Assembly: GCA_965235115.1 (NCBI GenBank)
Contig: OZ249447.1
Coordinates: 15,004,001-15,068,000 of the forward strand
Length of the DNA: 64,000 nucleotides
Reading direction: 5' to 3'
Origin: Laetmonice hystrix
Taxonomy: Eukaryota
Position numbers and translations under genes: made by a program. How positions within the stretch are numbered: position 1 is the stretch's first letter; the number at the start of each line of letters is the position of its first letter. Of this stretch, positions 38,058 through 62,144 are shown piece after piece. The notes under the pieces were generated by a model. The model was not told the origin of the DNA. It worked only from the letters and a program-made list of their open reading frames with translations, and ran no database searches.

Positions 38058-39134
38058 CTAATCTCTGGACTTCCTGGAGCCGGCAAACAGGATGGACTCG
38101 GACGACACGGTTCTCAGGCGCTGACGGTGGGCGGTGATCTCCTTGAAGGCCTTGGTGTTGCCCACCCTCTTGCGCTTGTTGGCGAACCACTTCTTGACCT
38201 GTTCCGAGGTGATGTCTCCTGCCTTGGCCATCACTTCAGCAGTGGACGGGCTCGGGTACGGGTGGTCCTCATTACGTTTGTACCACAGGTTCATGATCTT
38301 GACGGCGGTCGGGTTGAGGGCGGCGGACTTCCTCTTACGGGCCAGGACCTTCTGTGTTCCTGTTAGGGTCTGGGTCAAGTCCTCCAGGTCGGCACCGCTG
38401 CGTTCCTCTGGGCGTCTTTGGTGGCAGGAGAAGAGAAGGTGAAGGCTGCTCTCGACACGACTGACAAGGTGGTGCTGGAGGAGGTCGTAGTAACCATGGA
38501 TATTCTGGGACAACCACGGAGTGCTGACGGACTGATGGAGGCTCTTGTTGCGGTCCGTCTCGATCAGCGACGTCTGGTGGTCGTAGAAGTTGCGGAGCTG
38601 GTCCAGTTGTGACCTGTCGCCGACGGTTGATGCTGCACGGAGGAAGTTGTTGTGGAGACTGGGGGCACGGACCTGGAAGGACTCTGGGAAGGTGGTCGGG
38701 GTCGACATCAAGGTGAACGGTAGAGACGCCTGGTGACACTCGCTGTGGATAGCAATCTGTAGGTCCGGGAACATTGGGTGGGCGGCGATTCGCTGTACCT
38801 CAGGGTTGACGGAGTCAGGGATCTGGTAACTGTAGACATCCTGGATTCTGGTCTCAGTGTGGACGACGTCTGGTGGGAGTGGAGACAGAGGGCGGTACTG
38901 CAAGTGGAAGGACACGATGAGCACAAATATCGGAGAAATAATTTGGTCAATCCGCCAGACAAGTATATTGAACTCTTACTAACTCTAACTACACACTTCA
39001 AAATACATCAAGCTCTCTATAAGGAGATGAAGGGGTATTCGAGCCCCATAGCTTACCAAGGTCATAGGGTCAGGAAGATGAGTATCTTCTACCGTGAGGT
39101 CAAGGGTCAGGGCAGCGGGGCGTTTAGAAGTCAT
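38058..39134 (-). CDS. Divergent PBX-like TALE homeobox gene, type A copy 1 (2 exons, 305 aa)
   Basis: Exon 1 39057-39134 (MTSKRPAALTLDLTVEDTHLPDPMTL), intron 38898-39056 (GT-AG), exon 2 38058-38897. Homeodomain RKRKSAALNPTAVKIMNLWYKRNEDHPYPSPSTAEVMAKAGDITSEQVKKWFANKRKR has the TALE PYP loop and WFxNKR. Confidence 0.9.
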
Positions 39135-39955
39135 GGTGGACGTTGCCGAGTAGCTTGATAAGTCGCTTGATTCTGGAGATGTTGATAGCTCGAGTCTCGG
39201 ATGAGGTTTGGCTGACTCCTCTAGCTGGGCCTGTATATATACCGTCCCACCCCTCGGCTGGGGCTGAGTGCCGGGGCTGAGACCATCTTTGAGCTGCCCC
39301 TCGGTTCACACCTCGGCCCTTTGACCTATTGTGGGCCTCAGGAAGGGCGGCTTACTCGCTAACCTGTTTGAAGCCCACTTCAAAAGGAAGGTGTGACTCT
39401 CAGGTCCCAGTTTGCTCTTTCTCAAAAAGGGAGGTGTGAATGAGGTGTAAGCAGGCTTTGCAAACAATACTTTCCCGGATTGTGAACAACATCCGAATAT
39501 TACCTTACGCTCCGTTTATCTCTTATTTTTATTGTCGTATATTACGCGGACAATACACGGACAAGACATACCTTTTTGCTATAAATAATGTTTGATGTAA
39601 CGAAAATAAGGCCTCCTGTCTCCAGGAGACATAGTTTCTGTAACCAGCATGCTCTGCAGTAGATTATGCCATTCATAACTTTACATAATAACAGGGATTG
39701 AATTAAAAGGTTCTAAATGTTTTACACTGAAGTTGTTTTATGAAGATGCCCGTAAGGCATATAGCGGTAAGACTATTAACATTTCTACCAAAACGCGCGT
39801 ATAACCACTAAAACACAATCATTATCCCTAGCTCCAACCCTAACCCCCTAGATCTGACTATCAGATCTCCTCCAACCCCCCAACCCCCCGCCCTAAGTTT
39901 GTGTTCCCAATGGGGATCAGCCGATAAGCACGCAGCACAAAGTCGGAAGAGAAAA

Positions 39956-41169
39956 GGGATACCCCAGGGGAGCGTTTTAGGACCTCTGCTGTATCTACTA
40001 TATGTCAATGATATCATGGACTGCGATACTGCATCAGATTTAAACATGTTTGCAGATGACACAGCGATGGTGGCCCATGGAAGGGACCTGGAAGAAGTCA
40101 CGGCACAGATCAAGGACGACATGACCAAGCTGACAGGATGGTTTAACGCTAACAAACTAACAGTAAATCTCAACAAAACAAAATGTATGTTTTTCAGCAA
40201 GAATGTTCACAAGGACCATGAACTACCTGGCATAGAAGCGAATGGTGTTCAACTAAACTTTGTACATCAATATTCATACCTGGGTGTAACTCTGGACGAC
40301 AAACTACAGTTCAATGAGCATATAAGGAATAGTATTAAGAAAGCAGGTAATAAGGTGTACATGTTAGCAAAGATAAGACAGTTCATCAACACCCAGACAG
40401 CTCTTACCGTATTTAAAGCTATGATACTGCCCTATATAGAGTATGGAAACATCTTTCACGGGACATGTAATGAGGCCTACCAACAGAAGCTACAAGTCAT
40501 TCAAAATAATGGTTTAAAAATAGCGCTGAAAAGGGACATTTTATACAGAACGGTCGACCTACACATAGAAGCTAAGATCATACCTTGTAAATACAGAAGA
40601 CTTGTGATGTTACAAAAACGTATAAAGAGGTCAAGGAGGGTCAGGCACCACTGAACCGCAGAAACATCAGAACAAGAACTCATGAGGCAGCAACACTTGT
40701 CGTGCCATTTCCTAAGTCAGAATTATTTAAGAAATCTAACGCATACAGTAAAACTGTAAATTGGAATGCTTTACCCCCTTATCTAAGAAACTTAGGTGAG
40801 TATAACCGGTTCAAGCAAGAGATAAAAAATTATTATACCAGTATGTTCCTAACAGATAACAATCGTGGCAAGAATTGCTAATAGGGAAATTCAGGCAGAG
40901 TATAAAATTAGTAACATTTAAGTCTATCACTGCGCAGTTGTTATTACCCGAAAATATTTATGTGTCAAGTTGTTCACACTCTGCATTATATGATTACGGC
41001 TTGCTTGGTGAATTACTAAAATAATACTATGACTGTATGTATATTATGTATATATGTCATGTCTGTAGATACTGTACATATTCAAAACAGGACCCCACAT
41101 TTGTTACGGCATCCAGCCGAGTGGGAACTCCTGGGTAAAGATGTCAATAAAAAAAAAAAAAAAAAAAAA
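39956..41169 (+). mobile_element. 5'-truncated non-LTR retrotransposon (CR1/L2/Jockey-like LINE): RT C-terminus, 3' UTR and polyA tail
   Basis: GIPQGSVLGPLLYLLYVND...MFADDT...YLGVTLDDKLQF; after a frameshift near 40620-40650 it continues ...FKKSNAYSKTVNWNALPPYLR...FKQEIK to stop 40879-40881; AATAAA merging into an A-run at 41146-41169. Confidence 0.9.
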
Positions 41170-41559
41170 GGCTGTAGGTTGAAGTGTTCAAAATAGCCAC
41201 CAGGTGGTGTCAACAGTATCTCAGGAGTAACACCAGGGGGCATTGTGGTATGCGTACTTTGACAGACTGCAGACTAGCGATGATTTCGCATACTATTATA
41301 AATCAATTCACACAAACGAAAACAGCACACCGGGGTTTCTTAAAGAATTATGAAAAAAAAAATCGATTAATAAATTATCCAGCTTAAAGATGTAAAAAAA
41401 TTAATACTAATGCAGCTGAACATAAATAACATGGCACAAACGTTGATAGCGACATATGTATGATCATCTAAAATATTATATTGATTGACAGGCATGGGGA
41501 GTATTAGACATCCAAACTCTTTCGTTACAATCTCTATTCTATAGAAATACACATGACCT

Positions 41560-41860
41560 TGCTTTTGAAGTGGGGTTCAAAAGGCTCCACACTCGAGACG
41601 CCCTCGTTTAAGTGGTACTCAACATACTTGTAACGGTAACACCTCATTCACATGCACCGTCCTATTCTAGGAGGAGCAAACTGGGACCTGAGAGTCACAC
41701 CTTCCTTTTGAAGTGGGCTTCAAACAGGTTGGCGAGTAAGCCGCCCTTCCTGAGGCCACAATAGGTCAAAGGGCCGAGGTGTGAACCGAGGGGCAGCTCA
41801 AAGATGGTCTCAGCCCCGGCACTCAGCCCCAGCCAAGGGGTGGGACGGTATATATACAGG
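41560..41860 (+). promoter_or_regulatory. Type-A promoter: T-box half-sites, TTTGAAG palindromes and TATA (mirrored at ~39230-39450 for copy A1)
   Basis: TAACACCT 41637, TCACACCT 41695, AGGTGTGA 41777, TTTTGAAGTGGGGTTCAAAA 41563-41582, CTTTTGAAGTGGGCTTCAAA ~41705, TATATATA 41849-41856; ATG at 41956. Confidence 0.6.
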
Positions 41861-41955: not shown

Positions 41956-43015
41956 ATGACTTCTAAACGCCCTACTGCCCTGACCCTTGACCTCACGGTA
42001 GAAGATACTCATCTTCCTGACCCTATGACCTTGGTAAGCTATGGGGCTCGAATACTCCCTTCATGTCCTCATTGAGAGATTCAAGTGTAAGAGTTCAATA
42101 TATACTTGAAATCAGTCTGACGGATTGACCAAATTATTTCTCTTTATATTTGTGTTCATCGTGTTCTTCTGCTTGCAGTACCGCCCTCTGTCTCCACTGT
42201 CACCAAACGTCGTCCACACTGAGACCAGAAACCAGGATGTCTACAGTTACCAGATCCCTGACTCCGTCAACCCTGAGGTACAGCGAATCGCCGCCCACCC
42301 AATGTTCCCGGACCTACAGACTGCTATCCATAGCGAGTGTCACCAGGCGTCTCTACCGTTCACCTTGATGTCGACCCCGACCACCTTCCCAGAGTCCTTC
42401 CAGGTCCGTGCCGCCAGCCTACACAACAACTTCCTCCGTGCAGCATCAACCGTCGGCGACAGGTCACAACTGGATCAGCTTCGCAACTTCTACGACCACC
42501 AGACGTCGCTGATCGAGACGGACCGAAGCAAAAGCCTCCATCAGTCCGTCAGCACTCCGTGGTTGTCTCAGAATATCCATGGTTACTACGACCTCCTCCA
42601 GCACCACCTTGTCAGCCGTGTAGAGAGCAGCCTCCACCTATTCTCCTGCCACCAAAGACGCCCAGAGGAACGCAGCGGTGCCGACCTGGAGGACCTGACC
42701 CAGACCCTAACAGGAACACAGAAGGTCCTGGCCCGTAAGAGAAAGTCCGCCGCCCTCAACCCGACCGCCGTCAAGATCATGAACCTCTGGTACAAACGTA
42801 ACGAGGACCACCCGTACCCGAGCCCGTCCACGGCTGAAGTGATGGCCAAGGCAGGAGACATCACCTCGGAACAGGTCAAGAAGTGGTTCGCCAACAAGCG
42901 CAAGAGGATGGGCAACACCAAGGCCTTCAAGGAGATCACCGCCCAACGTCAGCGCCTAAGAACCGTGTCGTCCGAGTCAATCCTGCTTGCCGGCTCCAGG
43001 AAGTCCAGAGATTAG
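41956..43015 (+). CDS. Divergent PBX-like TALE homeobox gene, type A copy 2 (2 exons, 304 aa)
   Basis: Exon 1 41956-42033, intron 42034-42178 (GT-AG, phase 0), exon 2 42179-43015; near-identical inverted copy of A1; CCACCATG start context. Confidence 0.9.
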
Positions 43016-43244: not shown

Positions 43245-43760
43245 AGGTCTCACAAACCAGTCGGGTGCGACTCTCTCTCTCTCTCTTTATCTATGTGATG
43301 TACCTCTCAGCATGAGAGGGGTTACCCTGCATGTTACCCTACATGCAGTAAGATGTTAACAACAACAAGTACGATCTGAGCCTCTCACTTTAAAGTAAGC
43401 TCCAACAGCCAGGAATGTATTACCGACTCTGTCCTGTGTGACTCTACCACCTAGTGAGGTGTTAGATTTCCTTTTGAAGTAGGGTCTCACAAAGCAGGAA
43501 GGTGTCACATTGTCCCTTTGAAGTTAGCTCTATCATCCAGTAAGGTGTTACCGCGTCACTTTATCATCCAGTAAGGTGTGAAGTTACCATTTGAAGTAGA
43601 GTCTCACCAACCGGTAAGGTGTGACTCAGTTCTTTTGATGTTACTGTTTTTCAAAGAACAATGTGTTACAAGCTCAGCGCTTTTATCTGAGATCAAACTG
43701 CAGCTCAAAGAGAGCCAATAAAATTATGCGTTGTTACGCCAGTATCAGTATAAATAGAGG
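43245..43760 (+). promoter_or_regulatory. Type-B promoter/enhancer of B1 (AGGTGTNA and TTTGAAGT motif array, CCAAT, TATAAATA 43749-43756)
   Basis: Repeated motifs read directly; this is a diverged version of the B2-B5 promoters. Confidence 0.65.
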
Positions 43761-43844: not shown

Positions 43845-44657
43845 ATGGCGACCACTGAGCTGACTTTCCACGACCTTCTCGACATGCTGCCCTTACCCTG
43901 CAGTAGTCCATGCCCTCAGCCTCCAGACAGTCCCCTGTCTCAGCACCAGCACACCGACGCTAACCCGACCTTCCACGATCTACAGACTGCCATCCACAGT
44001 GCCTGCCAACAGACGTCTCTCCCGTTCACCCTGATGTCCACCCCGGCCACCTTCCCAGTGCCCTTCCAGATCCGAGCCGCCAGCCTTCAGACCAGGTTCA
44101 CTACGGAACTCACAGTCACTGACAGTCCAGAGCTGGGCCAGCTTCGTGTCTTCTACGACCAGCAGGTGTCCCACATCGAGATGGAGCGCAACCACAGTCT
44201 ACAGCTGTCCGCCAAGTTACCATGGTTGTTCTTCACCATCAACAGTTACTACGACAACCTCCAGCATCAGCTTGTCAGCCGCGTCGAGAGCAGCCTCAAC
44301 TTCCTCTTTTCCTACCGCCAGCAGCCATACCAACCCAAGGCCAGCCAACATGTCTCTACACCTTGCAAGCAAAAGGTTCCGGTCAGGAAGCCCAAGTCCC
44401 CTTCCCTCAACCCGACTGCGGTCAAGATCATGAGCCTGTGGTACAAACGTAACCAAGCCCACCCGTACCCATCCCAGTCGGCAACTGAAGTGATGGCCAA
44501 GACAGGAGGGATCCGAGCTGAGCAGGTCAGGAAATGGTTCGCCAACAAGCGCAAGAGATCTGGATACACCAAGAAGTTCGACGTCTCCGGCAAGCCCCGC
44601 TGCAGCACAACTGTACCGAGTGATCATCTACTGCTCACCACAGCCACCCGGGAGTGA
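43845..44657 (+). CDS. Divergent PBX-like TALE homeobox gene, type B copy 1 (intronless, 270 aa)
   Basis: AAGATGG start 96 nt after TATA; homeodomain RKPKSPSLNPTAVKIMSLWYKRNQAHPYPSQSATEVMAKTGGIRAEQVRKWFANKRKR; AATAAA at 44812. Confidence 0.9.
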   Translation: MATTELTFHDLLDMLPLPCSSPCPQPPDSPLSQHQHTDANPTFHDLQTAIHSACQQTSLPFTLMSTPATFPVPFQIRAASLQTRFTTELTVTDSPELGQLRVFYDQQVSHIEMERNHSLQLSAKLPWLFFTINSYYDNLQHQLVSRVESSLNFLFSYRQQPYQPKASQHVSTPCKQKVPVRKPKSPSLNPTAVKIMSLWYKRNQAHPYPSQSATEVMAKTGGIRAEQVRKWFANKRKRSGYTKKFDVSGKPRCSTTVPSDHLLLTTATRE

Positions 44658-45654: not shown

Positions 45655-46215
45655 TTAAGTTTCCTTTTGTTGTAGGCTCTCACAAACCAATCGGGTGCGA
45701 CTCTCTCTCTCTCTGTGATGTACCTCTCAGCATGAGAGGTGTTACCGACTCTGTCTTAATGACTCTTATAATGTAGTACGGTGTTAATGTACCTTTTGAA
45801 GTAAGACCTCAACAACAAGTAAGATCTGAGCCTCTCACTTTGAAGTCAGGCTCTAATAGCCAGGAATGTGTGACCGACTCTGTCCTGTGTGACTCTACCT
45901 CCTAGTAGGTGTTAGATTTCCTTTTGAAGTAGGGTCTCACAAAGCAGGAAGGTGTCACATTGTCCCTTTGAAGTTAGCTCTATCATCCAGTAAGGTGTTA
46001 CCGCGTCACTTTATTATCCAGTAAGGTGTCAAGTTACCATTTGAAGTAGAGTCTCACCAACCGGTAAGGTGTGACTCAGTTCTTTTGATGTTACTGTTTT
46101 TCAAAGAACAATGTGTTACAAGCTTAGCGCTTTTATCTGAGATCAAAGTGCAGCTCAAAGAGAGCCAATCAAGGTATGCCTTGCGCACCTCCCGCCAGTA
46201 TCAGTATAAATAGAG
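45655..46215 (+). promoter_or_regulatory. Type-B promoter, short form (B2)
   Basis: Same motif array; TATAAATA 46205-46212. Confidence 0.65.
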
Positions 46216-48880
46216 GCCCTCATTCAGCGAGCAGGTCATACCATCCTTACTGCTCACCGTGACCACATCAAGCTCTCATCCACAAAACGACACCGTGAAG
46301 ATGGCGACCACTGAGCTGACTTTCCACGACTTTCTCGACATGCTGCCCTAACCCTGCAGTAGTCCATGCCCTCAGCCTCCAGACAGTCCCCTGTCTCAGC
46401 ACCAGCACACCGACGCTAACCCGACCTTCCACGATCTACAGACTGCCGTCAACAGTGCCTGCCAACAGACGTCTCTCCCGTTCCCATTGATGTCCACCCC
46501 AGCCACCTTCCCAGTGCCCTTCCAGATCCGAGCCGCCAGCCTTCAGACCAGGTTCACTACGGCACTCACAGTCACTGACAGTCCAGAGCTGGGCCAGCTT
46601 CGTGTCTTCTACGACCAGCAGGTGTCCCACATCGAGATGGAGCGCAACCACAGTCTACAGCTGTCCGCCAAGTTACCATGGTTGTTCTTCACCATCAACA
46701 GTTACTACGACAACCTCCAGCATCAGCTTGTCAGCCGCGTCGAGAGCAGCCTCAACCTCCTCTTCTCCTACCGCCAGCAGTCCGACCAACCCAAGGCCAG
46801 CCAACATGTCTCTACACCTTGCAAGCACAAGGTCCCGGTCAGGAAGCCCAAGTCTCCTTCCCTCAACCCGACTGCTGTCAAGATCATGAGCCTGTGGTAC
46901 AAGCGTAACCATAACAGTTTCGGAGGAAACTGATTGTTAATAAATACGCGATACTTACCTCATAACATATAAGAGACTTACAGTTTCTCGATTCCCAATG
47001 GTCAAAAAATTTAATAAAAGTGTTCTAAGTGAAACAAGAATGAGTTCCACCAGAACTCCTGTCTATCTAACATATTCGGTGTATGGCTCCCTCTAGCGGA
47101 GATCCGCTGGATCGTGCGCCCCCTAGTGTCCATGTGACCTAGTAGTCAGATTTAAATGACCACTAAGCGGGGAGGCGGGAAGGGCCTTTAATGTTATGAG
47201 GTAAGTATCGCGTATTTATTAACAATCAGTTTCCTCCGAAACTGTTATGGTTAATTACATACGCTTCTACTTACCTCATAACATATGAGAGCGAGTGCTA
47301 AGCATAGGAGGTGGGAAGACAGAAATATTCACTCCACAGCCATACCCATTGAGGCGTAGGCCCATGCACTTGTTTTCACCTGGGAACGTTTATAGCGTTA
47401 AATCCTGAAAACTGCTATACGTGTGTAGGGAAGGTAATACCTGCTCCTTGTGAGGGAACCAAGGGCCGGAAGACTGAACAGATAACATCTGCCCCCCCCC
47501 CTTCTTTTTGTCCCACGCTCTCCATCATGCAGTGACGTGGACAAACAACGGCCTGGACCACTATGAGGTGGCCCAGACTAAAAGGGCGTCCTCCTGACCA
47601 CCAGGTTCACGCAATAAGACTGTAAAGGTGGTGTCTGATAGCCAAAAGGCAGCCTCGAGGAATTCGGCGAAGGTTACTCCATTAATAGGAGCCAAGGACG
47701 CAGAAATCGCCCGCACCTCAAGAACCTTAACACGATGAAACTGTAAAGACTTGGACAAGGCCGCGTCTGCCCGAGTCAAGGCTATAAGCTAAAGCCTTCC
47801 ACCTTCCACAATTGTAGCGGGCGTGATGTCGAGGGGTACGCACTCACCAAAGACACGACACCCCCTCTAACAGGCAGCTCTACAGGCGCTCCTCATCATC
47901 CGGCCTGAGCTCGGAGCTCAGAGCCAGGGTCGGGTTGTTAGCCACAGATTGTGGTAACAAAGGTCACAATGGAGGAACAGGGGCCAAAACGCGCTCCCCC
48001 GAAGGCAGTAAATTCCGACCACCTCAGCCCTGAGGTTAATGCTACAGGAACATGGTCTTTCAAGTACAACTTGGTGTACGGAAGACATAAGATAAATAAG
48101 GGGGGACGCAACAATGCGTTCAGTACCACCGACCAACTCCAGTAAGGGGCCTTCCTCGGCTTTACGGGCTCAAGAAATATCAAATTGCGTAATAGCGCAC
48201 TGAGTTCCCGTCAAGAGCTAAAGGAACCTCCGCCTGGTGCTGATGCATTTGCTGCAATCACTGATCTGATTCCTCGCACGGCGGAGACCGACAACCCCCG
48301 AAGAAACCTGTCAAGCAGACAATCGGCTACTGACAGGGGGCGGTGAGATCAAAGTCATATGTTCCCCTGCCCATTCAATAAGGAAGGCCCGCTGTCTCGA
48401 TACGCAGCTTGCGAGGAGGGCCTATGTTTCTCGGCCATGCTCTGGGCCGCTTGTCCCGAGAATCCACGCTTCTCACCTCTGTTCCTGACAAGCAGAGGGG
48501 TGTAAATCGAAAATCTTCGGAGCTGAATGCCACTTCCCTCTCTAAAACAACAGATCGGGGTCATAAGGCAGGGATCGAGCCCAATCCCGCAACAATTCTG
48601 ATATCTCTGTGAAACAAGGCCAACCCGGCCCATATTATGACTGGCCCAGACAGGCGCGTTTCGCGGCGCGTTCGAGACGCGTCGGCCATTTTCATGCACG
48701 CCTCTTGACGCACGCACGCACGCACGCCCCTGTGTGTCCCCGGCTTTAAACTTGCCCTGCACATGAAATGACGCACAACGTCACTCGGTGCTGGCGACAC
48801 CACCAGAGGATGTCCCCGGTTATCCGGAATAGTAGCAGTGACCGAGTGTCCCTTTGATTTAACAGATAGGTCACTGCCAT

Positions 48881-49043
48881 CCCAACTAACACACAACCTT
48901 TTCACAACGTTGAATAAAGTTGTAGTTTGGTCACTTCACAACGTTGTGTCTAACGAAACTACAACGTTGTGGCAACATAGAAGACCAAACAAATTTACGT
49001 AGCGTTATGGGAACGTTGTAGCAACGTAATATTGCTAGCGGGG
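48881..49043. mobile_element. Small CACTA/EnSpm-like MITE nested in the DIRS element
   Basis: Imperfect termini CCCAACTAACA / TGCTAGCGGGG, AT on both flanks, internal CAACGTTG repeats. Confidence 0.45.
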
Positions 49044-51958
49044 ATCGTACTGTCGGGGTGGATCAGGACTACTGATCGCGTCGGTAGCCAGGCGAAGTGA
49101 TGAAGAGCCTAGGAAAATTGCCTTTAATTCTAGACCATATATGTGTCCGTGTCACACCCCGCTCCAACTATTTAGGAAATAGCTCACAAACCTCCCTGAG
49201 ATATCTGTGGAGAAGGGAAACATCCGGGGTTAGATATTCCAAAGTACACCCCTCTGAAAAGTCTGTGGATCGATCCACCACTGGAGGAACTGCGCCAGAG
49301 ACCGAGGAAGGAGAACCCTGCACCCGCAGAGGAAATCCCTGCTCGAGCGCCACGCACTCAACAACGCAAACTGCATCAGTCACCCATGCAGTTTGCCAAG
49401 CGGTCCTGAGTTCAAAAAAGAAACTCCGATAAACTGCAGACATAGCTTGTCGGTGCAACTTCCAGGCCTATACACTTCACCAGGTTTATCCTCCATCCCA
49501 GGGGAGGTAAAACTGAGAGCAACTGGGTGGCCTGAACGGGCCACACCATGTAAGGATGAAGCTCCATCCCTTCCGACCTGTCCAGCTTCCCAACTGTGTT
49601 GCCAGCTAGGTAAACTCGGACCGAACGGCAGAACTACCAACTGGAAACATGGACTGTCGTTGGAACACTGAGAAACTTCTAGTGCAAGAAAGTGTCCTCG
49701 ATGTCTATCGTGTCTATCGTATCTACCTATAGACACTGAGACACCCCACGTTTCTAGAGAACCCCTACGGGTTGAAGGAAAATAATTCCCGGGGCGGACT
49801 CACTACCGACCCCAAAGTGACGACTGCACCTTTCTCTCGAAGTTTCCTGATCTCTCCTATTCTTTAGCTAGAACTTAAGGAAACAGAAAGGGAGGGCCCT
49901 GCGAGAGTGAGCCGATGAACGGGCCATACCTGGCGGGCTCGACAAACTCCAGACGCAATCACTCCCTGAGAACAGACAGGGTCCACGGAATCGGGTAATG
50001 ATGAAGCAAGCTCACCGCTTGTGTGTGCCTCGTTGTAAGCGAACGCTTAATTCCGAACCAAAATGTCCAGATCCAACTCAGGCTTATATCGCTAGACGGC
50101 TATGCAAAACTAAGGACTTAGAGTCGAACCCCGGCGAAACAGGATAGAGTAGATAGGAATTAAAAACCAAACTCTATGCCGAGTGACGTATAAGGCCAGG
50201 GCCGCCCTAGTCCTATCGCCGAAAGATATAGCCTCCGGCGACTATAACCAAGGTCGGCCTAGATGGCCGCCGCCGTGACTAGGCGAACACGGTTTGCCTG
50301 AGCAAAGAAAGGGCACTTTGGAACTGAAAAGGTCGAAGGCTCCTTCAGTCCAAGAGAAAGGTCCCTTGGGTCCAACCTAGAACCCCCTACCAGGAAGGTC
50401 CGAATGCAGAGTACATTCCGCCATAAAAAACGGATTAACGGGGGTTGATCTCCCCTAACGTCCGACCGAAGTAGGGTACAAGGGGAAGGGATCCGTGAAA
50501 AGATCCATAGTTGGACAAACTGAGCGTAGATCCTCTACACCCCCCGAAACTCTGCCCGTAACCGTCTAGATATTGGCAACCAATCCATGCCAAATCGCCA
50601 CAAATAACAGACCATATAGGACTCTACTTAATCCGATGTGATTAACTCAAAAAGAATTTTTGAGTCACCATGTTTTTCCTTTGTCTCTCAATTTAAAAAC
50701 TGTATCAACATGCAGTTTTCCAGATAGTCTGATCTTTACCACCGTTTCCATAGACTACTCACAGCAATAGATGGCGCTACAAGGACTCTACCTCGTGCCA
50801 TCATGGTCCCCAAGCCAGTTTAAATAACTTCATATGTGTCAGGCGGGGGACAAAGAGAACAGGAAATTTTAGGATTTTCCAAAAAAGCCGATTTAAAGAT
50901 TTTCAAGGCTTACTTGACTTCAAGGTGCTGCGGAGACCCTGCAAGCATACAAGAGAGAGGCCGCCTCTAGCCTACTGACTCCCCCGATCCGCGAGGGAGG
51001 CGCGATTACGCTGCCTGGCCGACAGAGCACTCCTGGATCGGTCGCGTAAGCCTAGGCCATAGGCCTATACTGATCGACATCTCTCATGGTCCCAAGATCT
51101 AGACCAGACCATGGTAACGACGCTGTCCTATGAAAACCCCAAAGTCTAGTGCGACGGCCAACTTGACCCGGGCAACGATCCTGAGATCGACGACCAGCGT
51201 GAAAGAGACGTTCCTAGGTACAGACGATCACGAACGCTCCCGATCTCGGTCTGGATGCCGCCTCTGGGATTAAATATATATAATATCGCCTGCACAATAT
51301 CGTCTCAATGGTCTAGATGCGAGAGATATCTTCCTGGCATGTAGATCTCTAGCCAAGGCATCGATCTCGAACTCGATCTTGATCTAGTCATTACGGGGAG
51401 ATCGATCAACAAACAAAATCGTCTATGCGATCTTGTCTCTTAATGCACTTAGTGCGAGAGAACTCTTTCCTCGCATGTATCCTAGGCCTAGATCTCTAGC
51501 TCCAGGCACCGATCCTGATCCTTATCCCGATCCTGATCTGGATTCCGATCCTAACTGGATCCCGATCTCATCGATCTCGAGCTCGACGGACCTGCCAAAT
51601 CTTGTGCCTATCAAGCGGGGAAATCTTCCACTTGATGCCATCTCCAGCGGGAGATAAACTGTATCCCTAATTCATGACGGGTGCAAATAACCCCAAAATT
51701 CGGGAGTTCTCCCGCCTAAGCAGGAGTAACGATCTCGACCTCGAGCCAGGAACGAACTGGAGTAAGGCTCGGTGCCTGATCTTGATCAGATCGGATCAGA
51801 TCGGGGGATCGAACCGCAGATCATCAATTGATCGACTGCCCGACATCGTCTTAGTGAGCCTATACGAGAGATCTCAATCCTCGCATGCCCGAGGCACCGA
51901 GGCCCAAAGGCACATATGCCCGATCTCAGGAAGAATCCCCGATTGTCTACGCGCGTCT

Positions 51959-52350
51959 GCGCGGCTGGCCCGGGTGGTCTCCTCGAGGAGACCACCGGAC
52001 GCAGACGAGGGGGAGAACGGTCGCTCGAGCTCTGGCTCGAGGCGAACGCGAGTCTCCCCTCGCGTCAAGAGATCGATCCCGAGCCGACTCGCGCGGCTGG
52101 CCCGGGTGGCCTCCTCGAGGAGACCACCGGACGCAGACGAGGGGGAGAACGGTTGCTCGAGCTCTGGCTCGAGGCGAACGCGAGTCTCCCCTCGCGTCAA
52201 GAGATGGATCTAGGGCTCGCGCGGCTCGCGCGGCTGGCCCGGGTGGCCTCCTCGAGGAGACCCCCGGACGCAGACGAGGGGGAGAACGGTCGCTCGAGCT
52301 CTGGCTCGAGGCGAACTCGAGTCTCCCCTCGCGTCAAGAGATCGATCCAG
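51959..52350. repeat. Three ~132-137-bp tandem repeats in the DIRS gag-like region
   Basis: Units start at 51959, 52091 and 52228 (GCGCGGCTGGCCCGGGTGG...GCGTCAAGAGAT). Confidence 0.9.
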
Positions 52351-54394
52351 AGACGCTGAACGTCTGCGTGTGATCGTCTCAACGTCTCAACGGGCTTAAT
52401 TCCCTTCCTCGCGTGGGAAGCCCGAGGCACCGATCCCGAGACATTATCATTTCGACCCAGTGATCGGTGCCTACGCTGTACGCCACCCGCTGTGCGTGAT
52501 TGGGCGTATCAGCGTATTCAGACTGGTCAGGTGGGTGCGTAGGTCGAGGATCCATGACCTTACGCTTACCCACCTAGTCCTGCACGGGACTGACCAGCTG
52601 ATTGAGACGTGACGTCACACCCTTAGCCACCACGGTGGGCGGGTGACACGCTTCATTGCCTGGAGCAAGCACAGTGTGCACCCCGGCTCACTGCTGACCG
52701 TTCCGCCTGGTCAGACAAGGCCAAAGGAAAACTTGTCGGTCAACATGGCCTCGCTTACCTGGACTAACAGAGGCCGACAAGGAGTGTACCTGGCCCTTAG
52801 AATAACTAAGGGAACATGCTGAATAACTTCTACCACACAAGGAGGTAGTGCGTCTACCTATACTGGTAGACTACAAACAACAAATAGACAGGAATGACCA
52901 AAGGGAATACAGAACTATAAGGAAAAAACCACGGTACTCACGAAGACGTCCTGCGGTAGCAGTGGTCATTTCAAATCTGACTACTAGGTCACATGGACAC
53001 TAGGGGGCGCACGATCCAGCGGATCTCCGCTAGAGGGAGCCATACACCGAATATGTTAGATAGACAGGAGTTCTGGTGGAACTCATTCTTGTTTCACTTA
53101 GAACACTTTTATTAAATTTTTTGACCATTGGGAATCGAGAAACTGTAAGTCTCTCATATGTTATGAGGTAAGTAGAAGCGTATGTAATTAACCAAGCCCA
53201 CCCGTACCCATCCCAGTCGGCAACTGAAGTGATGGCCAAGACAGGAGGGATCCGAGCTGAGCAGGTCAGGAAGTGGTTCGCCAACAAGCGCAAGAGATCT
53301 GGATACACCAAGAAGTTCGACGTCTCTGGCAAGCCCCGCTGCAGCACAACTGTACCGAGTGATCATCTACTGCTCACCACAGCCGCCCGCGACTGAACAC
53401 GTCTGCTTTATGGGCATGAACTGGCGATTGCTGTGATTTACCATGACTGTCTATAATGTGTAATAATGTGTAATCTACATGTATTATATCTTGTACATGT
53501 ATCACCAAGGTGATATATCAGATGTATATACTGTACATAGCAATAAAATAAAAATCCATTCTAATTTACATCCTCTGGTCGATCTATTCCTGTATATTTT
53601 CAATTTTCCTTTAGTTGTTTTTCCTCGACAACCTATCATTCGTTATTTTAAATTTACAATCTCAAAACATCCTTTCAAGTCAAATATTACTCGTCAATCA
53701 CGATTTATATTCAGAGGATTGCTCGTAATCTTTCTGAAGGCGAAAAGGAGTTCTTCGTAGCGCCACCTGTTGGTTACAGATTATCAAACTTTGAGCAGAA
53801 TAGAGGCACGTTCAAAGCGCAACCTAGTGGAATCATTCCAAGACCAACTCAATAATTTTGATAGTTTCAGCAGGTCAAAAATTAACTTTTAATTTTCCTT
53901 TGAAATTTTTCTATTAGGCCCCTACTCTTTTTACCTAGGTCCAAAAGAGTTATAATATATTAATAATATACACGTATTTCCTGTCCTAGTTACCCACGAT
54001 GCTATCTCAGCTATATGGTGTATAACATACGTTTCATGTTTTTTATCATAATAAATACTGGTCATATCCCAAAGAAGTCTCCCGAGTTGGTCCTCTGACA
54101 AAGTGTCTCTTCGTCTTGAACTCGTCCCCTGGTCAAGTCAGCAGCACTGAATCCTATTCTCGGTTGGTTACGGACAACATAATCTTCATGTGCAGTTATC
54201 AGTGCCCTCTGGGGGTTCTTGAAGATACTGTATTAACACCACCTGGTGACTACTTTGAACACTTCATTCTCCCGTCTTCCCCCTTTCCGACCGCATGCTG
54301 TGTTGACAAATGACCAATTTTTCCCATCGAATAGGAATCCCTTAGAAGTTTTTTCTATCAACACTGCCCTGTAAGACTCTGCCACGAAACAACG

Positions 54395-55085
54395 TGTTAA
54401 GTTTCCTTTTGTTGTAGGCTCTCACAAACCAATCGGGTGCGACTCTCTCTCTCTGTGATGTACCTCTCAGCATGAGAGGTGTTACCGACTCTGTCTTAAT
54501 GACTCTTATAATGTAGTACGGTGTTAATGTACCTTTTGAAGTAAGACCTCAACAACAAGTAAGATCTGAGCCTCTCACTTTGAAGTCAGGCTCTAATAGC
54601 CAGGAATGTGTGACCGACTCTGTCCTGTGTGACTCTACCACCTAGTGAGGTGTTAGATTTCTTTTTGAAGTAGGGTCTCACCAACCAGTAAGGTGTCCCT
54701 TTGTCCCTTTGAAGTTAGCCCTATCATCCAGTAAGGTGCTACCGACTCTGTCCTGTGTGACTCTACCACCTAGTGAGGTGTTAGATTTCCCTTTGAAGTA
54801 GGGTCTCACAAAGCAGGAAGGTGTCACATTGTCTCTTTGAAGTTAGCTCTATCATCCAGTAAGGTGTTACCGCGTCACTTTACTATCCAGTAAGGTGTCA
54901 AGTTACCATTTGAAGTAGAGTCTCGCCAACCGGTAAGGTGTGACTCAGTTCTTTTGATGTTACTGTTTTTCAAAGAACAATGTGTTACAAGCTCAGCGCT
55001 TTTATCTGAGATCAAAGTGCAGCTCGAAGAGAGCCAATCAAGGTATGCCTTGCGCACCTCCCGCCAGTATCAGTATAAATAGAGG
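54395..55085 (+). promoter_or_regulatory. Type-B promoter, long form with internal ~128-bp duplication (B3)
   Basis: ACCGACTCTGTCCTGTG...CCAGTAAGGTG block present twice; TATAAATA 55074-55081. Confidence 0.65.
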
Positions 55086-55169
55086 CCCTCATTCAGCGAG
55101 CAGGTCATACCATCCTTACTGCTCACCGTGACCACATCAAGCTCTCATCCACAAAACGACACCGTGAAG

Positions 55170-55997
55170 ATGGCGACCACTGAGCTGACTTTCCACGACC
55201 TTCTCGACATGCTGCCCTTAGCCTGCAGCAGTCCATGCCCTCAGCCTCCAGACAGTCCCCTGTCTCAGCACCTGCACACCGACGCTAACCCGACCTTCCA
55301 CGATCTTCAGACTGCCATCCGCAGTGCCTGCCAACAGACGTCTCTCCCGTTCACCCTGATGTCCACCCCGGCCACCTTCCCAGTGCCCTTCCAGATCCGA
55401 GCCGCCAGCCTTCAGACCAGGTTCACTACGGCACTCACAGTCACTGACAGTCCAGAGCTGGGCCAGCTTCGTGTCTTCTACGACCAGCAGGTGTCCCACA
55501 TCGAGATGGAGCGCAACCACAGTCTACAGCTGTCCGCCAAGTTACCATGGTTGTTCTTCACCATCAACAGTTACTACGACAACCTCCAGCATCAACTTGT
55601 CAGCCGCGTCGAGAGCAGCCTCAACTTCCTCTTTTCCTACCGCCAGCAGCCATACCAACCCAAGGCCAGCCAACATGTCTCTACACCTTGCAAGCAAAAG
55701 GTTCCGGTCAGGAAGCCCAAGTCCCCTTCCCTCAACCCGACTGCGGTCAAGATCATGAGCCTGTGGTACAAACGTAACCAAGCCCACCCGTACCCATCCC
55801 AGTCGGCAACTGAAGTGATGGCCAAGACAGGAGGGATCCGAGCTGAGCAGGTCAGGAAATGGTTCGCCAACAAGCGCAAGAGATCTGGATACACCAAGAA
55901 GTTCGACGTCTCCGGCAAGCCCCGCTGCAGCACAACTGTACCGAGTGATCCTCACCACAGCCACCCGGGAGTGAACACGTCTGGTTTATGGGCATGA
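55170..55997 (+). CDS. TALE homeobox type B copy 3 (275 aa; C-terminal tail frameshifted after the homeodomain)
   Basis: Homeodomain intact; an 8-nt deletion (ATCTACTG) between 55950 and 55951 changes the tail to PHHSHPGVNTSGLWA*. Confidence 0.85.
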   Translation: MATTELTFHDLLDMLPLACSSPCPQPPDSPLSQHLHTDANPTFHDLQTAIRSACQQTSLPFTLMSTPATFPVPFQIRAASLQTRFTTALTVTDSPELGQLRVFYDQQVSHIEMERNHSLQLSAKLPWLFFTINSYYDNLQHQLVSRVESSLNFLFSYRQQPYQPKASQHVSTPCKQKVPVRKPKSPSLNPTAVKIMSLWYKRNQAHPYPSQSATEVMAKTGGIRAEQVRKWFANKRKRSGYTKKFDVSGKPRCSTTVPSDPHHSHPGVNTSGLWA

Positions 55998-58092: not shown

Positions 58093-58655
58093 TTAAGTTT
58101 CCTTTTGTTGTAGGCTCTCACAAACCAATCGGGTGCGACTCTCTCTCTCTGTGATGTACCTCTCAGCATGAGAGGTGTTACCGACTCTGTCTTAATGACT
58201 CTTATAATGTAGTACGGTGTTAATGTACCTTTTGAAGTAAGACCTCAACAACAAGTAAGATCTGAGCCTCTCACTTTGAAGTCAGGCTCTAATAGCCAGG
58301 AATGTGTGACCGACTCTGTCCTGTGTGACTCTACCTCCTAGTAGGTGTTAGATTTCCTTTTGAAGTAGGGTCTCACAAAGCAGGAAGGTGTCACATTGTC
58401 CCTTTGAAGTTAGCTCTATCATCCAGTAAGGTGTTACCGCGTCACTTTATTATCCAGTAAGGTGTCAAGTTACCATTTGAAGTAGAGTCTCACCAACCGG
58501 TAAGGTGTGACTCAGTTCTTTTGATGTTACTGTTTTTCAAAGAACAATGTGTTACAAGCTCAGCGCTTTTATCTGAGATCAAAGTGCAGCTCAAAGAGAG
58601 CCAATCAAGGTATGCCTTGCACACCTCCCGCCAGTATCAGTATAAATAGAGGCCC
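58093..58655 (+). promoter_or_regulatory. Type-B promoter, short form (B4)
   Basis: 6 AGGTGT and 5 TTTGAAGT counted by eye, plus TTCAAAG, AGATCAAAG, CCAAT and TATAAATA 58641-58648. Confidence 0.65.
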
Positions 58656-58736: not shown

Positions 58737-59549
58737 ATGGCGACCACTGAGCTGACTTTCCACGACTTTCTCGACATGCTGCCCTTACCCTGCAGTAGTC
58801 CATGCCCTCAGCCTCCAGACAGTCCCCTGTCTCAGCACCAGCACACCGACGCTAACCCGACCTTCCACGATCTACAGACTGCCGTCAACAGTGCCTGCCA
58901 ACAGACGTCTCTCCCGTTCACCCTGATGTCCACCCCAGCCAGCTTCCCAGTGCCCTTCCAGATCCGAGCTGCCAGCCTTCAGACTAGGTTCACTACGGCA
59001 CTCACAGTCACTGACAGTCCAGAGCTGGGCCAGCTTCGTGTCTTCTACGACCAGCAGGTGTCCCACATCGAGATGGAGCGCAACCACAGTCTACAGCTGT
59101 CCGCCAAGTTACCATGGTTGTTCTTCACCATCAACAGTTACTACGACAACCTCCAGCATCAGCTTGTCAGCCGCGTCGAGAGCAGCCTCAACCTCCTCTT
59201 CTCCTACCGCCAGCAGCCAGACCAGCCCAAGGCCAGCCAACATGTCTCCACACCTTGCAAGCAAAAGGTTCCGGTCAGGAAGCCCAAGTCTCCTTCCCTC
59301 AACCCGACTGCTGTCAAGATCATGAGCCTGTGGTACAAGCGTAACCAAGCCCACCCGTACCCATCCCAGTCGGCAACTGAAGTGATGGCCAAGACAGGAG
59401 GGATCCGAGCTGAGCAGGTCAGGAAGTGGTTCGCCAACAAGCGCAAGAGATCTGGATACACCAAGAAGTTCGACGTCTCTGGCAAGCCCCGCTGCAGCAC
59501 AACTGTGCCGAGTGACCATCTACTGCTCACCACATCCAGCCGGGAGTGA
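58737..59549 (+). CDS. TALE homeobox type B copy 4 (intronless, 270 aa)
   Basis: Intact ORF nearly identical to B1; same homeodomain. Confidence 0.9.
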   Translation: MATTELTFHDFLDMLPLPCSSPCPQPPDSPLSQHQHTDANPTFHDLQTAVNSACQQTSLPFTLMSTPASFPVPFQIRAASLQTRFTTALTVTDSPELGQLRVFYDQQVSHIEMERNHSLQLSAKLPWLFFTINSYYDNLQHQLVSRVESSLNLLFSYRQQPDQPKASQHVSTPCKQKVPVRKPKSPSLNPTAVKIMSLWYKRNQAHPYPSQSATEVMAKTGGIRAEQVRKWFANKRKRSGYTKKFDVSGKPRCSTTVPSDHLLLTTSSRE

Positions 59550-60559: not shown

Positions 60560-61245
60560 TAAGTTTCCTTTTGTTGTAGGCTCTCACAAACCAATCGGGT
60601 GCGACTCTCTCTCTCTGTGATGTACCTCTCAGCATGAGAGGTGTTACCGACTCTGTCTTCATGGCTCTTATAATGTAGTACGGTGTTAATGTACCTTTTG
60701 AAGTAAGACCTCAACAACAAGTAAGATCTGAGCCTCTCACTTTGAAGTCAGGCTCTAATAGCCAGGAATGTGTGACCGACTCTGTCCTGTGTGACTCTAC
60801 CACCTAGTGAGGTGTTAGATTTCTTTTTGAAGTAGGGTCTCACCAACCAGTAAGGTGTCCCTTTGTCCCTTTGAAGTTAGCCCTATCATCCAGTAAGGTG
60901 CTACCGACTCTGTCCTGTGTGACTCTACCACCTAGTGAGGTGTTAGATTTCCCTTTGAAGTAGGGTCTCACAAAGCAGGAAGGTGTCACATTGTCCCTTT
61001 GAAGTTAGCTCTATCATCCAGTAAGGTGTTACCGCGTCACTTTATTATCCAGTAAGGTGTCAAGTTACCATTTGAAGTAGAGTCTCACCAACCGGTAAGG
61101 TGTGACTCAGTTCTTTTGATGTTACTGTTTTTCAAAGAACAATGTGTTACAAGCTCAGCGCTTTTATCTGAGATCAAAGTGCAGCTCAAAGAGAGCCAAT
61201 CAAGGTATGCCTTGCGCACCTCCCGCCAGTATCAGTATAAATAGA
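60560..61245 (+). promoter_or_regulatory. Type-B promoter, long form (B5)
   Basis: 8 AGGTGT and 7 TTTGAAGT counted by eye; duplication period 128 bp (60775 vs 60903); TATAAATA 61236-61243. Confidence 0.65.
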
Positions 61246-61331: not shown

Positions 61332-62144
61332 ATGGCGACCACTGAGCTGACTTTCCACGACTTTCTCGACATGCTGCCCTTACCCTGCAGTAGTCCATGC
61401 CCTCAGCCTCCAGACAGTCCCCTGTCTCAGCACCACCATACCGACGCTAACCCGACCTTCCACGATCTACAGACTGCCGTCAACAGTGCCTGCCAGCAGA
61501 CGTCTCTCCCGTTCACCCTGATGTCCACCCCGGCCACCTTCCCAGTGCCCTTCCAGATCCGAGCCGCCAGCCTTCAGACCAGGTTCACTACGGCACTCAC
61601 AGTCACTGACAGTCCAGAGCTGGGCCAGCTTCGTGTCTTCTACGACCAGCAGGTGTCCCACATCGAGATGGAGCGCAACCACAGTCTACAGCTGTCCGCC
61701 AAGTTACCATGGTTGTTCTTCACCATCAACAGTTACTACGACAACCTCCAGCATCAGCTTGTCAGCCGCGTCGAGAGCAGCCTCAACCTCCTCTTCTCCT
61801 ACCGCCAGCAGTCGGACCAACCCAAGGCCAGCCAACATGTCTCCACACCTTGCAAGCACAAGGTCCCGGTCAGGAAGCCCAAGTCTCCTTCCCTCAACCC
61901 GACTGCTGTCAAGATCATGAGCCTGTGGTACAAGCGTAACCAAGCCCACCCGTACCCATCCCAGTCGGCAACTGAAGTGATGGCCAAGACAGGAGGGATC
62001 CGAGCTGAGCAGGTCAGGAAGTGGTTCGCCAACAAGCGCAAGAGATCTGGATACACCAAGAAGTTCGACGTCTCCGGCAAGCCCCGCTGCAGCACAACTG
62101 TACCGAGTGATCATCTACTGCTCACCACAGCCGCCCGCGACTGA
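61332..62144 (+). CDS. TALE homeobox type B copy 5 (intronless, 270 aa)
   Basis: Intact ORF; same homeodomain. Confidence 0.9.
   Translation: MATTELTFHDFLDMLPLPCSSPCPQPPDSPLSQHHHTDANPTFHDLQTAVNSACQQTSLPFTLMSTPATFPVPFQIRAASLQTRFTTALTVTDSPELGQLRVFYDQQVSHIEMERNHSLQLSAKLPWLFFTINSYYDNLQHQLVSRVESSLNLLFSYRQQSDQPKASQHVSTPCKHKVPVRKPKSPSLNPTAVKIMSLWYKRNQAHPYPSQSATEVMAKTGGIRAEQVRKWFANKRKRSGYTKKFDVSGKPRCSTTVPSDHLLLTTAARD

Follow-up and report, generated by a model that had tools for sequence, protein, structure and literature searches.

Each type-B TALE homeobox gene in the window (the whole stretch of Laetmonice hystrix DNA analysed, 64,000 nucleotides) is preceded by a tandem array of 43-bp units, which has a defined anatomy and is associated exclusively with genes of this type. 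Judged from its sequence, this array is most likely a real array of binding sites, and it probably represents a gene-specific, promoter-proximal tandem-repeat enhancer of an amplified family of SPILE-like TALE genes. Two short words, one T-box-like (word 1) and one HMG/TCF-like (word 2), are preferentially retained across the diverged paralogous promoters of this family. The comparison of these promoters supports a model in which gene-specific promoters are built from two recurring, constrained words.

The array of the B5 promoter (60639 to 61183, + strand) is resolved by cutting at GGTGT anchors into 13 head-to-tail units, all of 42-43 bp except for one of 31 bp. Because three unit types alternate, the array has a higher-order period of 128 bp, which spans three units. 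Two of the unit types read AGGTGT(T/C/G)A, 8-9 nt and then TTTGAAGT, and the third reads AGGTG(T/C)TACCGACTCTGTCC and then TGTGTGAC. Most units therefore read AGGTGTNA, 8-9 nt and TTTGAAGT, as represented by AGGTGTTA-N8-TTTGAAGT at 60938, AGGTGTCA-N9-TTTGAAGT at 60981 and AGGTGTCA-N8-TTTGAAGT at 61055, and the whole array contains 10 T-box-like words and 8 TTTGA(A/T)GT words. Arrays with periods of 43 and 128 bp are also reported by Tandem Repeats Finder at 54520-54872 and 60682-61034. The array is followed by, and partly overlaps, the proximal promoter (61131 to 61244, + strand), which contains reverse-oriented HMG/TCF-like sites (TTCAAAG at 61131, AGATCAAAG at 61171-61179 with (AG)ATCAAAG at 61173, and CTCAAAG at 61185), CCAAT at 61195 and the TATA box TATAAATAG at 61236-61244. 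The earlier note on this DNA described the B promoter as a degenerate tandem array of AGGTGT(T/C/G)A and a second word that ends in TTCAAAG, AGATCAAAG, CCAAT and TATAAATAG; this description agrees with the anatomy given here, and all strings quoted in the note are found in their places.

The other four B promoters of the window are paralogues of the B5 promoter, and the five are almost identical over about 640-770 bp, with an identical proximal promoter in all of them. The array and proximal promoter of B4 (58173 to 58649, + strand; ATG at 58737) contain one 128-bp unit fewer than those of B5, and those of B3 (54477 to 55082, + strand; ATG at 55170) have the same 13-unit form as those of B5. 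The array and proximal promoter of B2 lie at 45737 to 46213 (+ strand; ATG at 46301), upstream of a gene that a DIRS-type insertion interrupts near 46906. The array of B1 (43457 to 43757, + strand; ATG at 43845) is the shortest form and begins just downstream of the A2 gene. Thus, the B copies differ in the copy number of the 128-bp higher-order unit, and their arrays always abut the CCAAT and TATA boxes in the orientation of the gene. The composite AGGTGTNA-N7-10-TTTGAAGT matches the window 17 times, against 0.00 matches expected from shuffles, but these matches are not independent, because the units are copies of one ancestor and the promoters are near-identical paralogues. All 17 are located on the + strand inside the five B promoters.

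The B5 gene (61332 to 62144, + strand) is an uninterrupted open reading frame of 270 codons, in which a Homeobox_KN domain covers residues 199-238, and it is the last of the five type-B genes of the window. Two divergent type-A genes are also present, at 38058-38924 (− strand) and 42125-43015 (+ strand), and their protein is 55% identical to that of type B. The Homeobox_KN domain is detected with E=8e-11 in both types, and the homeodomain has the three-residue loop of the TALE class. The nearest named relative is an uncharacterised TALE protein of Mytilus with 34% identity, and homology to the relatives spans residues ~25-266, well past the homeodomain. There are 26 type-B genes, about 20 type-A genes and one type-C gene. 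The B and C genes are single uninterrupted open reading frames of 270-387 codons, and the TATA boxes are located about 95 nt upstream of the ATG. The type-A gene is predicted to have a first coding exon of 78 nt, which starts at the ATG at 41956, and an intron of 145 nt (42034-42178) with GT at 42034 and AG at 42177-42178. In B2 (46301-46912 and 53181-53393), residues 1-204 stop at the DIRS-type insertion (46906-53194) and residues 200-270 resume beyond it; the inserted element contains a 137-bp tandem repeat of three units (51950-52348). The match of B3 (55128-55997) to B5 stops at residue 260, and its open reading frame continues to a different stop. This diverged C-terminal tail suggests that B3 is a frameshift variant among copies that are otherwise 96-99% identical.

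By their sequences, these genes are a massively amplified, SPILE-like family of short, TATA-driven TALE homeobox genes, of which the clade placement is putative. In common with the SPILE genes, they encode a TALE homeodomain that is preceded by a conserved region, their sequences evolve rapidly, and near-identical copies are clustered in tandem. The SPILE clusters contain 8 copies in Lottia and 7 in a chiton (PMC8524836), whereas the copy number is far higher here and one array comprises 18 units, each of 7-10 kb. A cis-regulatory description of a SPILE gene was not found in the literature searched.

The type-A promoters do not align to the B promoters. The A2 promoter (41540 to 41860, + strand) is non-repetitive and contains two TTTTGAAGTGGG(G/C)TTCAAA elements, TAACACCT, GTCACACCT, GGTCAAAGG-N4-AGGTGTGAA, GCAGCTCAAAGA and a TATATATA box. 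The A1 promoter (39230 to 39470, − strand) repeats the A2 promoter in mirror image and contains TTACACCT and TTCACACCT in direct repeat, in addition to the proximal words of A2. The words are located at 41560-41800 and, mirrored, at 39260-39470. The A promoters carry either TAACACCT or TTCACACCT, together with GTCACACCT 3 nt from TTTTGAAGT. Both A1 and A2 bear out the claim of the earlier note that the two words recur in the type-A promoters despite their different organisation. GCAGCTCAAAGA is located about 55 nt upstream of the TATA box in the A promoters and at an equal distance in the B promoters. One of the type-A composite sites is decayed in the copies at the second locus (described below). 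A fragment of a reverse transcriptase (RVT_1; 39899-40654) lies between the two divergent A genes and ends in a poly(A) of 21 nt (41149-41169). It is located directly upstream of the A2 promoter and truncates the homology between the A1 and A2 promoters.

The type-C gene is located just beyond the end of the window (L033:1684-3608; G000:C13:15076683-15078607) and encodes a protein with 42% identity. Its promoter contains an array of its own, with 10.5 units of 65 bp, which is unique in the genome, and carries CCAAT and TATAAATA boxes. Each unit reads CTTTGAGG, 5 nt, CCTCAAAGG, 2 nt, AGGTGTGA and then GTCTCACC, so that a perfect AAGGTGTGA and an inverted CTTTGAG/CTCAAAG pair are present in every unit. 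A third word, GAGTCTCACC, is common to the B and C arrays, and together with AGGTGTGA it makes up an imperfect everted palindrome in C. A consensus 5' splice-site string, AAG|GTAAGG, is likewise present in each C unit, where it overlaps the T-box-like word, and the N-terminal coding region of the C gene contains a 66-bp repeat of 2.9 units (L033:2711-2903). A single-copy paralogue on chromosome 21 (L034, 35% identical) contains AAGGTGTGA, 12 nt and CTTTGAGG once in its upstream region, which is not significant alone. A canonical PBX-MEIS type composite, TGATTGACAG, is located about 35 nt from this site (L034:1790-1880; G000:C21:~4512290-4512380).

The earlier note described the sites as composite and of fixed spacing. 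The spacing between the two words is indeed 8-9 nt in the B arrays, because the units are tandem duplicates of one ancestor, but it is 3-4 nt in A, 2 nt in C and 12 nt in the chromosome-21 paralogue. The T-box-like word of type A is present in either orientation relative to the gene. A spacing-constrained composite element is therefore not found across A, B, C and the chromosome-21 gene, since neither spacing nor orientation is conserved among them, and only the close adjacency of the two words (12 nt or less) is kept.

The words themselves are shared to an extent that points to constraint. The A, B and C promoters were compared by their k-mers in an unbiased manner, without words chosen beforehand. 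The only 9-mers common to the three are AAGGTGTGA, AGGTGTGAC, GGTGTGACT and GGAAGGTGT, which are tiles of GGAAGGTGTGAC; the common 8-mers add TCAAAGGG, and none of 300 shuffles reaches these counts. The synonymous divergence (dS) of the genes is 0.76 between A and B, 1.06 between B and C and 0.67 between A and C, and it is very unlikely that a neutral 9-mer survives unchanged at a dS of 0.7-1.1. AAGGTGTGA matches the window 8 times against 0.9 (0.91) expected, and TTTGAAGTRGG matches 10 times against 0.1 expected; all of these matches are in TALE promoters, in which the near-identical copies of one locus count as one observation. Between the B promoters of the two loci, 1 of 95 word positions is changed, as compared with 22 of 266 other positions (Fisher one-sided p=0.007), in a single comparison of 361 collinear positions that was defined after the words were known; the coding dS between the two B loci is 0.059. 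The B and C arrays show residual similarity outside the words, such as GAGTCTCACC and TCTACCAC, and part of the word sharing may therefore reflect common descent rather than selection. The pattern TCAAAGG-N1-5-AGGTGTGA matches the genome 48 times, of which 29 are in A or C promoters. The remaining 19 matches, outside the TALE loci, were considered as members of a wider regulon, and this candidate was rejected: among the 12 flanks read, several belong to transposon copies with near-identical flanks and the rest are chance-like.

The distribution of the array in the genome is restricted. BLAST against the 627-Mb assembly detects the B5-type array at only 26 places, all at two loci of contig C13: 8 at 15.047-15.074 Mb (the window and its continuation) and 18 at 10.93-11.07 Mb. 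As determined by a protein search, every one of these places precedes a type-B TALE gene. The composite pattern matches the genome 113 times, as compared with 3 times for a control pattern. Of the 100 composite matches listed, at least 94 are inside the two C13 loci. The second locus (G000:C13:10930000-11068000; loci L007-L030, L035 and L036) consists of 18 head-to-tail units of 7.0-9.9 kb, each of which contains a type-A gene, then a type-B gene with a 43-bp array, and also a TALE-like fragment with 47% identity over residues 78-195. The 43-bp arrays of this locus have about 17 units and are partly degraded. A reading of the array as an RNA gene or hairpin was rejected, since neither an Rfam match nor inverted repeats are found in it.

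These results bear on two explanations, in which the array has no function in the expression of the genes. It is hardly conceivable that the array is a fragment of a dispersed satellite or transposable element unrelated to the genes, which is the outcome that the earlier note had named as fatal to its proposal. Mobile elements are close by, with the DIRS element inside B2 and the reverse-transcriptase fragment between the two A genes, but all matches to the array in the assembly are in the 26 B-gene promoters, it matches no Rfam family and has neither terminal nor inverted repeats, and the type-C array is not found anywhere else in the genome. The array may instead be a selectively neutral minisatellite, which was present in an ancestral promoter and has been spread and homogenised by duplication and conversion, with coincidental matches to the words. 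Variation in the copy number of the 128-bp unit, the presence of degraded units at the second locus and the ability of homogenisation to mimic conservation are all consistent with this explanation. It is nevertheless improbable, because the words persist in the non-repetitive A promoter and in a C array of another unit length at a dS of 0.7-1.1, because substitutions between the loci avoid the words, and because the array always abuts CCAAT and TATA in gene orientation.

Word 1 corresponds to the Brachyury/T-box half-site AGGTGTGA, and the preferred 5' A of this site is present in most units. The form of the half-site selected by TBX1 in SELEX is AGGTG(T/C)(G/T)A with a GTGT core, and tandem half-sites are used by T-box proteins (PMC4010391). 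A perfect AAGGTGTGA is present once in each B promoter (twice in B1), once in each type-A promoter and in every C unit; in A2 it is on the − strand and in A1 on the + strand, so that it faces its gene in the same way in both. Each A promoter contains an additional AGGTGTGA with a 5' G. The other B units read AGGTGT(T/C)A or AGGTGCTA. The commonest variants in B are AGGTGTTA and AGGTGTCA, neither of which is an optimal T-box site; AGGTGTTA and AGGTGCTA fit the TBX1 form, and AGGTGTCA is outside it. The identification of the first word with the T-box element in the earlier note is thus borne out as a match in sequence, either to AGGTGTGA or to the TBX1 form. A, B, C and the chromosome-21 paralogue thus have in common with known T-box elements the exact half-site, including its preferred 5' A, but these putative sites are 43 or 65 bp apart here, instead of being adjacent. 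About eight T-box genes are present in the genome, and a T-box protein is plausible as the likeliest binder of word 1, being the assignment that fits best. Readings of the words as an E-box or as a Snail, Zelda, nuclear-receptor, NF-kB, Su(H) or AP-1 site were examined by eye and rejected, because each fits a minority of the units.

The assignment of word 2 is less straightforward. Conservation is highest in the block formed by TTTGAAGT and the RGG after it, and the word is HMG/TCF-like in the reading YTTTGAR. The TCF core is CTTTG(A/T)(A/T), or (A/T)(A/T)CAAAG on the other strand, so that the base before TTTG must be C. Among 18 distinct distal units, TTTGAAGT is preceded by T in 8, by C in 5, by A in 3 and by G in 1. 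The strict core WTCAAAG is present 6 times in B against 0.24 expected, mainly owing to ACTTCAAAG and to AGATCAAAG of the proximal promoter. It does not occur in A or C; CTCAAAG, GTCAAAG or TTCAAAA are used there instead, frequently in inverted pairs with 6-7 nt between them. Sox-like CATTGT or CTTTGT is located in the spacer of the b-type units at both loci. The earlier note equated this word with the TCF/LEF element, which fits the enriched sites of the B promoters in sequence but does not extend to A, to C or to most of the distal units; its own reservation, that the second factor may not be TCF, agrees well with the presence of the critical C in only 5 of the 18. An HMG-box factor (TCF or Sox) is a candidate for word 2, and an unknown factor would fit as well. 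In a homologue of another organism (L031, 40% identical), WTCAAAG is present 5 times in the upstream region against 0.39 expected (0 of 500 shuffles), together with four (A/G)GTGTCA words and one AGGTGTCA upstream of a TATAAATAGG box, which is the same box as here. Both words are absent from the promoters of the 34%-identical homologues (L032 of Mytilus, and L038 and L039 of two Logan contigs), which are too distant for a close comparison, and the upstream sequence of L052 and L053 was too short to be used.

Xenopus nodal5/6 receive joint input from VegT, a T-box protein, and beta-catenin/TCF, and the earlier note, which drew this analogy, predicted that a maternal T-box factor and beta-catenin/TCF act at fixed spacing on the multicopy homeobox array as an AND-gate. 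The match of word 1 to the T half-site (PMC4010391), the matches of ACTTCAAAG and AGATCAAAG to the TCF consensus, the enrichment of WTCAAAG in B and in L031, and the distance between the two words, which never exceeds 12 nt in A, B, C or the chromosome-21 paralogue, are in accord with this proposal. It is nonetheless unlikely to be correct in this form, because most of the distal units lack the C that is critical for TCF, because the A and C promoters do not contain the strict TCF core, and because spacing and orientation vary between the gene types, the fixed spacing being explained by tandem duplication. The words may be functional but read by other proteins: a Sox-type HMG protein, the TALE proteins themselves, or an unknown zinc-finger protein that recognises TTTGAAGTRGGG. 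A Sox protein would account for the CATTGT or CTTTGTT that the b-type units also carry at both loci, and a TALE auto- or cross-regulatory loop would account for the TGTCA core inside AGGTGTCA and for the alanine at position 50 of the homeodomain. Other readers are also suggested by the four (A/G)GTGTCA words of L031 and by the most conserved block, which is TTTGAAGT with RGG and not CTTTGAA. However, the C array does not contain any TGTCA, yet has a perfect AAGGTGTGA in each unit, and no long word other than the canonical T half-site, with the 5' A preferred there, is shared by A, B and C. This explanation is therefore a possible but minor one, with a somewhat better chance than the AND-gate.

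If the array is a tandem-repeat enhancer, as we consider probable, it may work as follows. Each unit would present a T-box half-site-like (A/G)AGGTGTNA beside TTTGAAGT(A/G)GG, and the stacking of 10-17 units in gene orientation would concentrate many like sites in the ~600 bp that precede CCAAT and TATA. Sequence-specific factors that already exist and are probably maternal would occupy these sites, with a T-box protein on word 1 and, on word 2, either an HMG-box protein such as TCF or Sox or another, unknown factor, and the loading of the array would permit fast and strong transcription from many gene copies at once. We infer the binding of the words, the factors that bind them, the timing of expression and the start site from the DNA. 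The genes have the features of first-wave zygotic genes, in that they are tandemly multicopy and short, have no or one intron, and are preceded by TATA and CCAAT boxes and a dense cluster of like sites. In limpet and mussel, the zygotic expression of SPILE genes of the A/C and B clades begins at the 4-16-cell stage (PMC8524836). The zygotic genes that are expressed first in vertebrates (miR-427/430 and nodal5/6) are multicopy and intron-poor (10.1101/488056), and in ascidians a T-box protein has a part in genome activation (10.64898/2026.07.30.741679). Because of these features, the timing of SPILE expression and the vertebrate and ascidian parallels, the array is read as a tandem-repeat enhancer that would load many copies quickly.

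The genes resemble Xenopus nodal5/6 and miR-427 and zebrafish miR-430 in being tandemly amplified, short and intron-poor, and the promoters of those genes are loaded with sites for maternal factors, to which the putative site clusters here would correspond. They differ from them in that they encode spiralian TALE homeodomain proteins and in that the sites are arranged in a strict tandem repeat of 43 bp (B) or 65 bp (C). Tandem-repeat enhancers are represented by the 72-bp repeats of SV40, the 60/81-bp enhancer repeats of the Xenopus rDNA spacer and promoter VNTRs. As in these enhancers, sites for transcription factors appear to be multiplied by duplication of a short unit directly upstream of the core promoter, and the copy number varies between alleles or copies. 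However, the units here are many more (10-17) and have a three-unit higher-order structure, and the array precedes each member of an amplified developmental gene family.

The blastomere quartets of spiral-cleaving embryos are specified by SPILE genes, which belong to the first zygotic genes of these embryos. It may be speculated, with little confidence, that a maternal T-box protein and an HMG partner (TCF/beta-catenin or SoxB) directly switch on the ~47 SPILE-type genes through their repeat-built promoters at the first zygotic wave, and that the two loci form high-capacity transcription hubs like that of zebrafish miR-430, which would couple the animal-vegetal asymmetry of beta-catenin in spiral cleavage to quartet identity. 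The promoters provide a compact candidate for a cis-regulatory code, in which two or three short words are repeated 10-17 times before every gene copy. If the T-box and HMG readings are true, this code would parallel, in a spiralian, the way in which maternal T-box and Wnt control amplified early genes in the frog, and it would be a case in which regulatory sites are kept through heavy turnover of the promoter.

Homologues of the type-C gene closer than 31% are not found. TGA codons are present in the mitochondrial COX1 gene. The closest relatives of the family in other organisms are P0001, P0002 and P0011, with 47-60% identity, and P0002 and P0011 adjoin each other and a CCDC162-type gene on a contig of ENA ERZ26222911.
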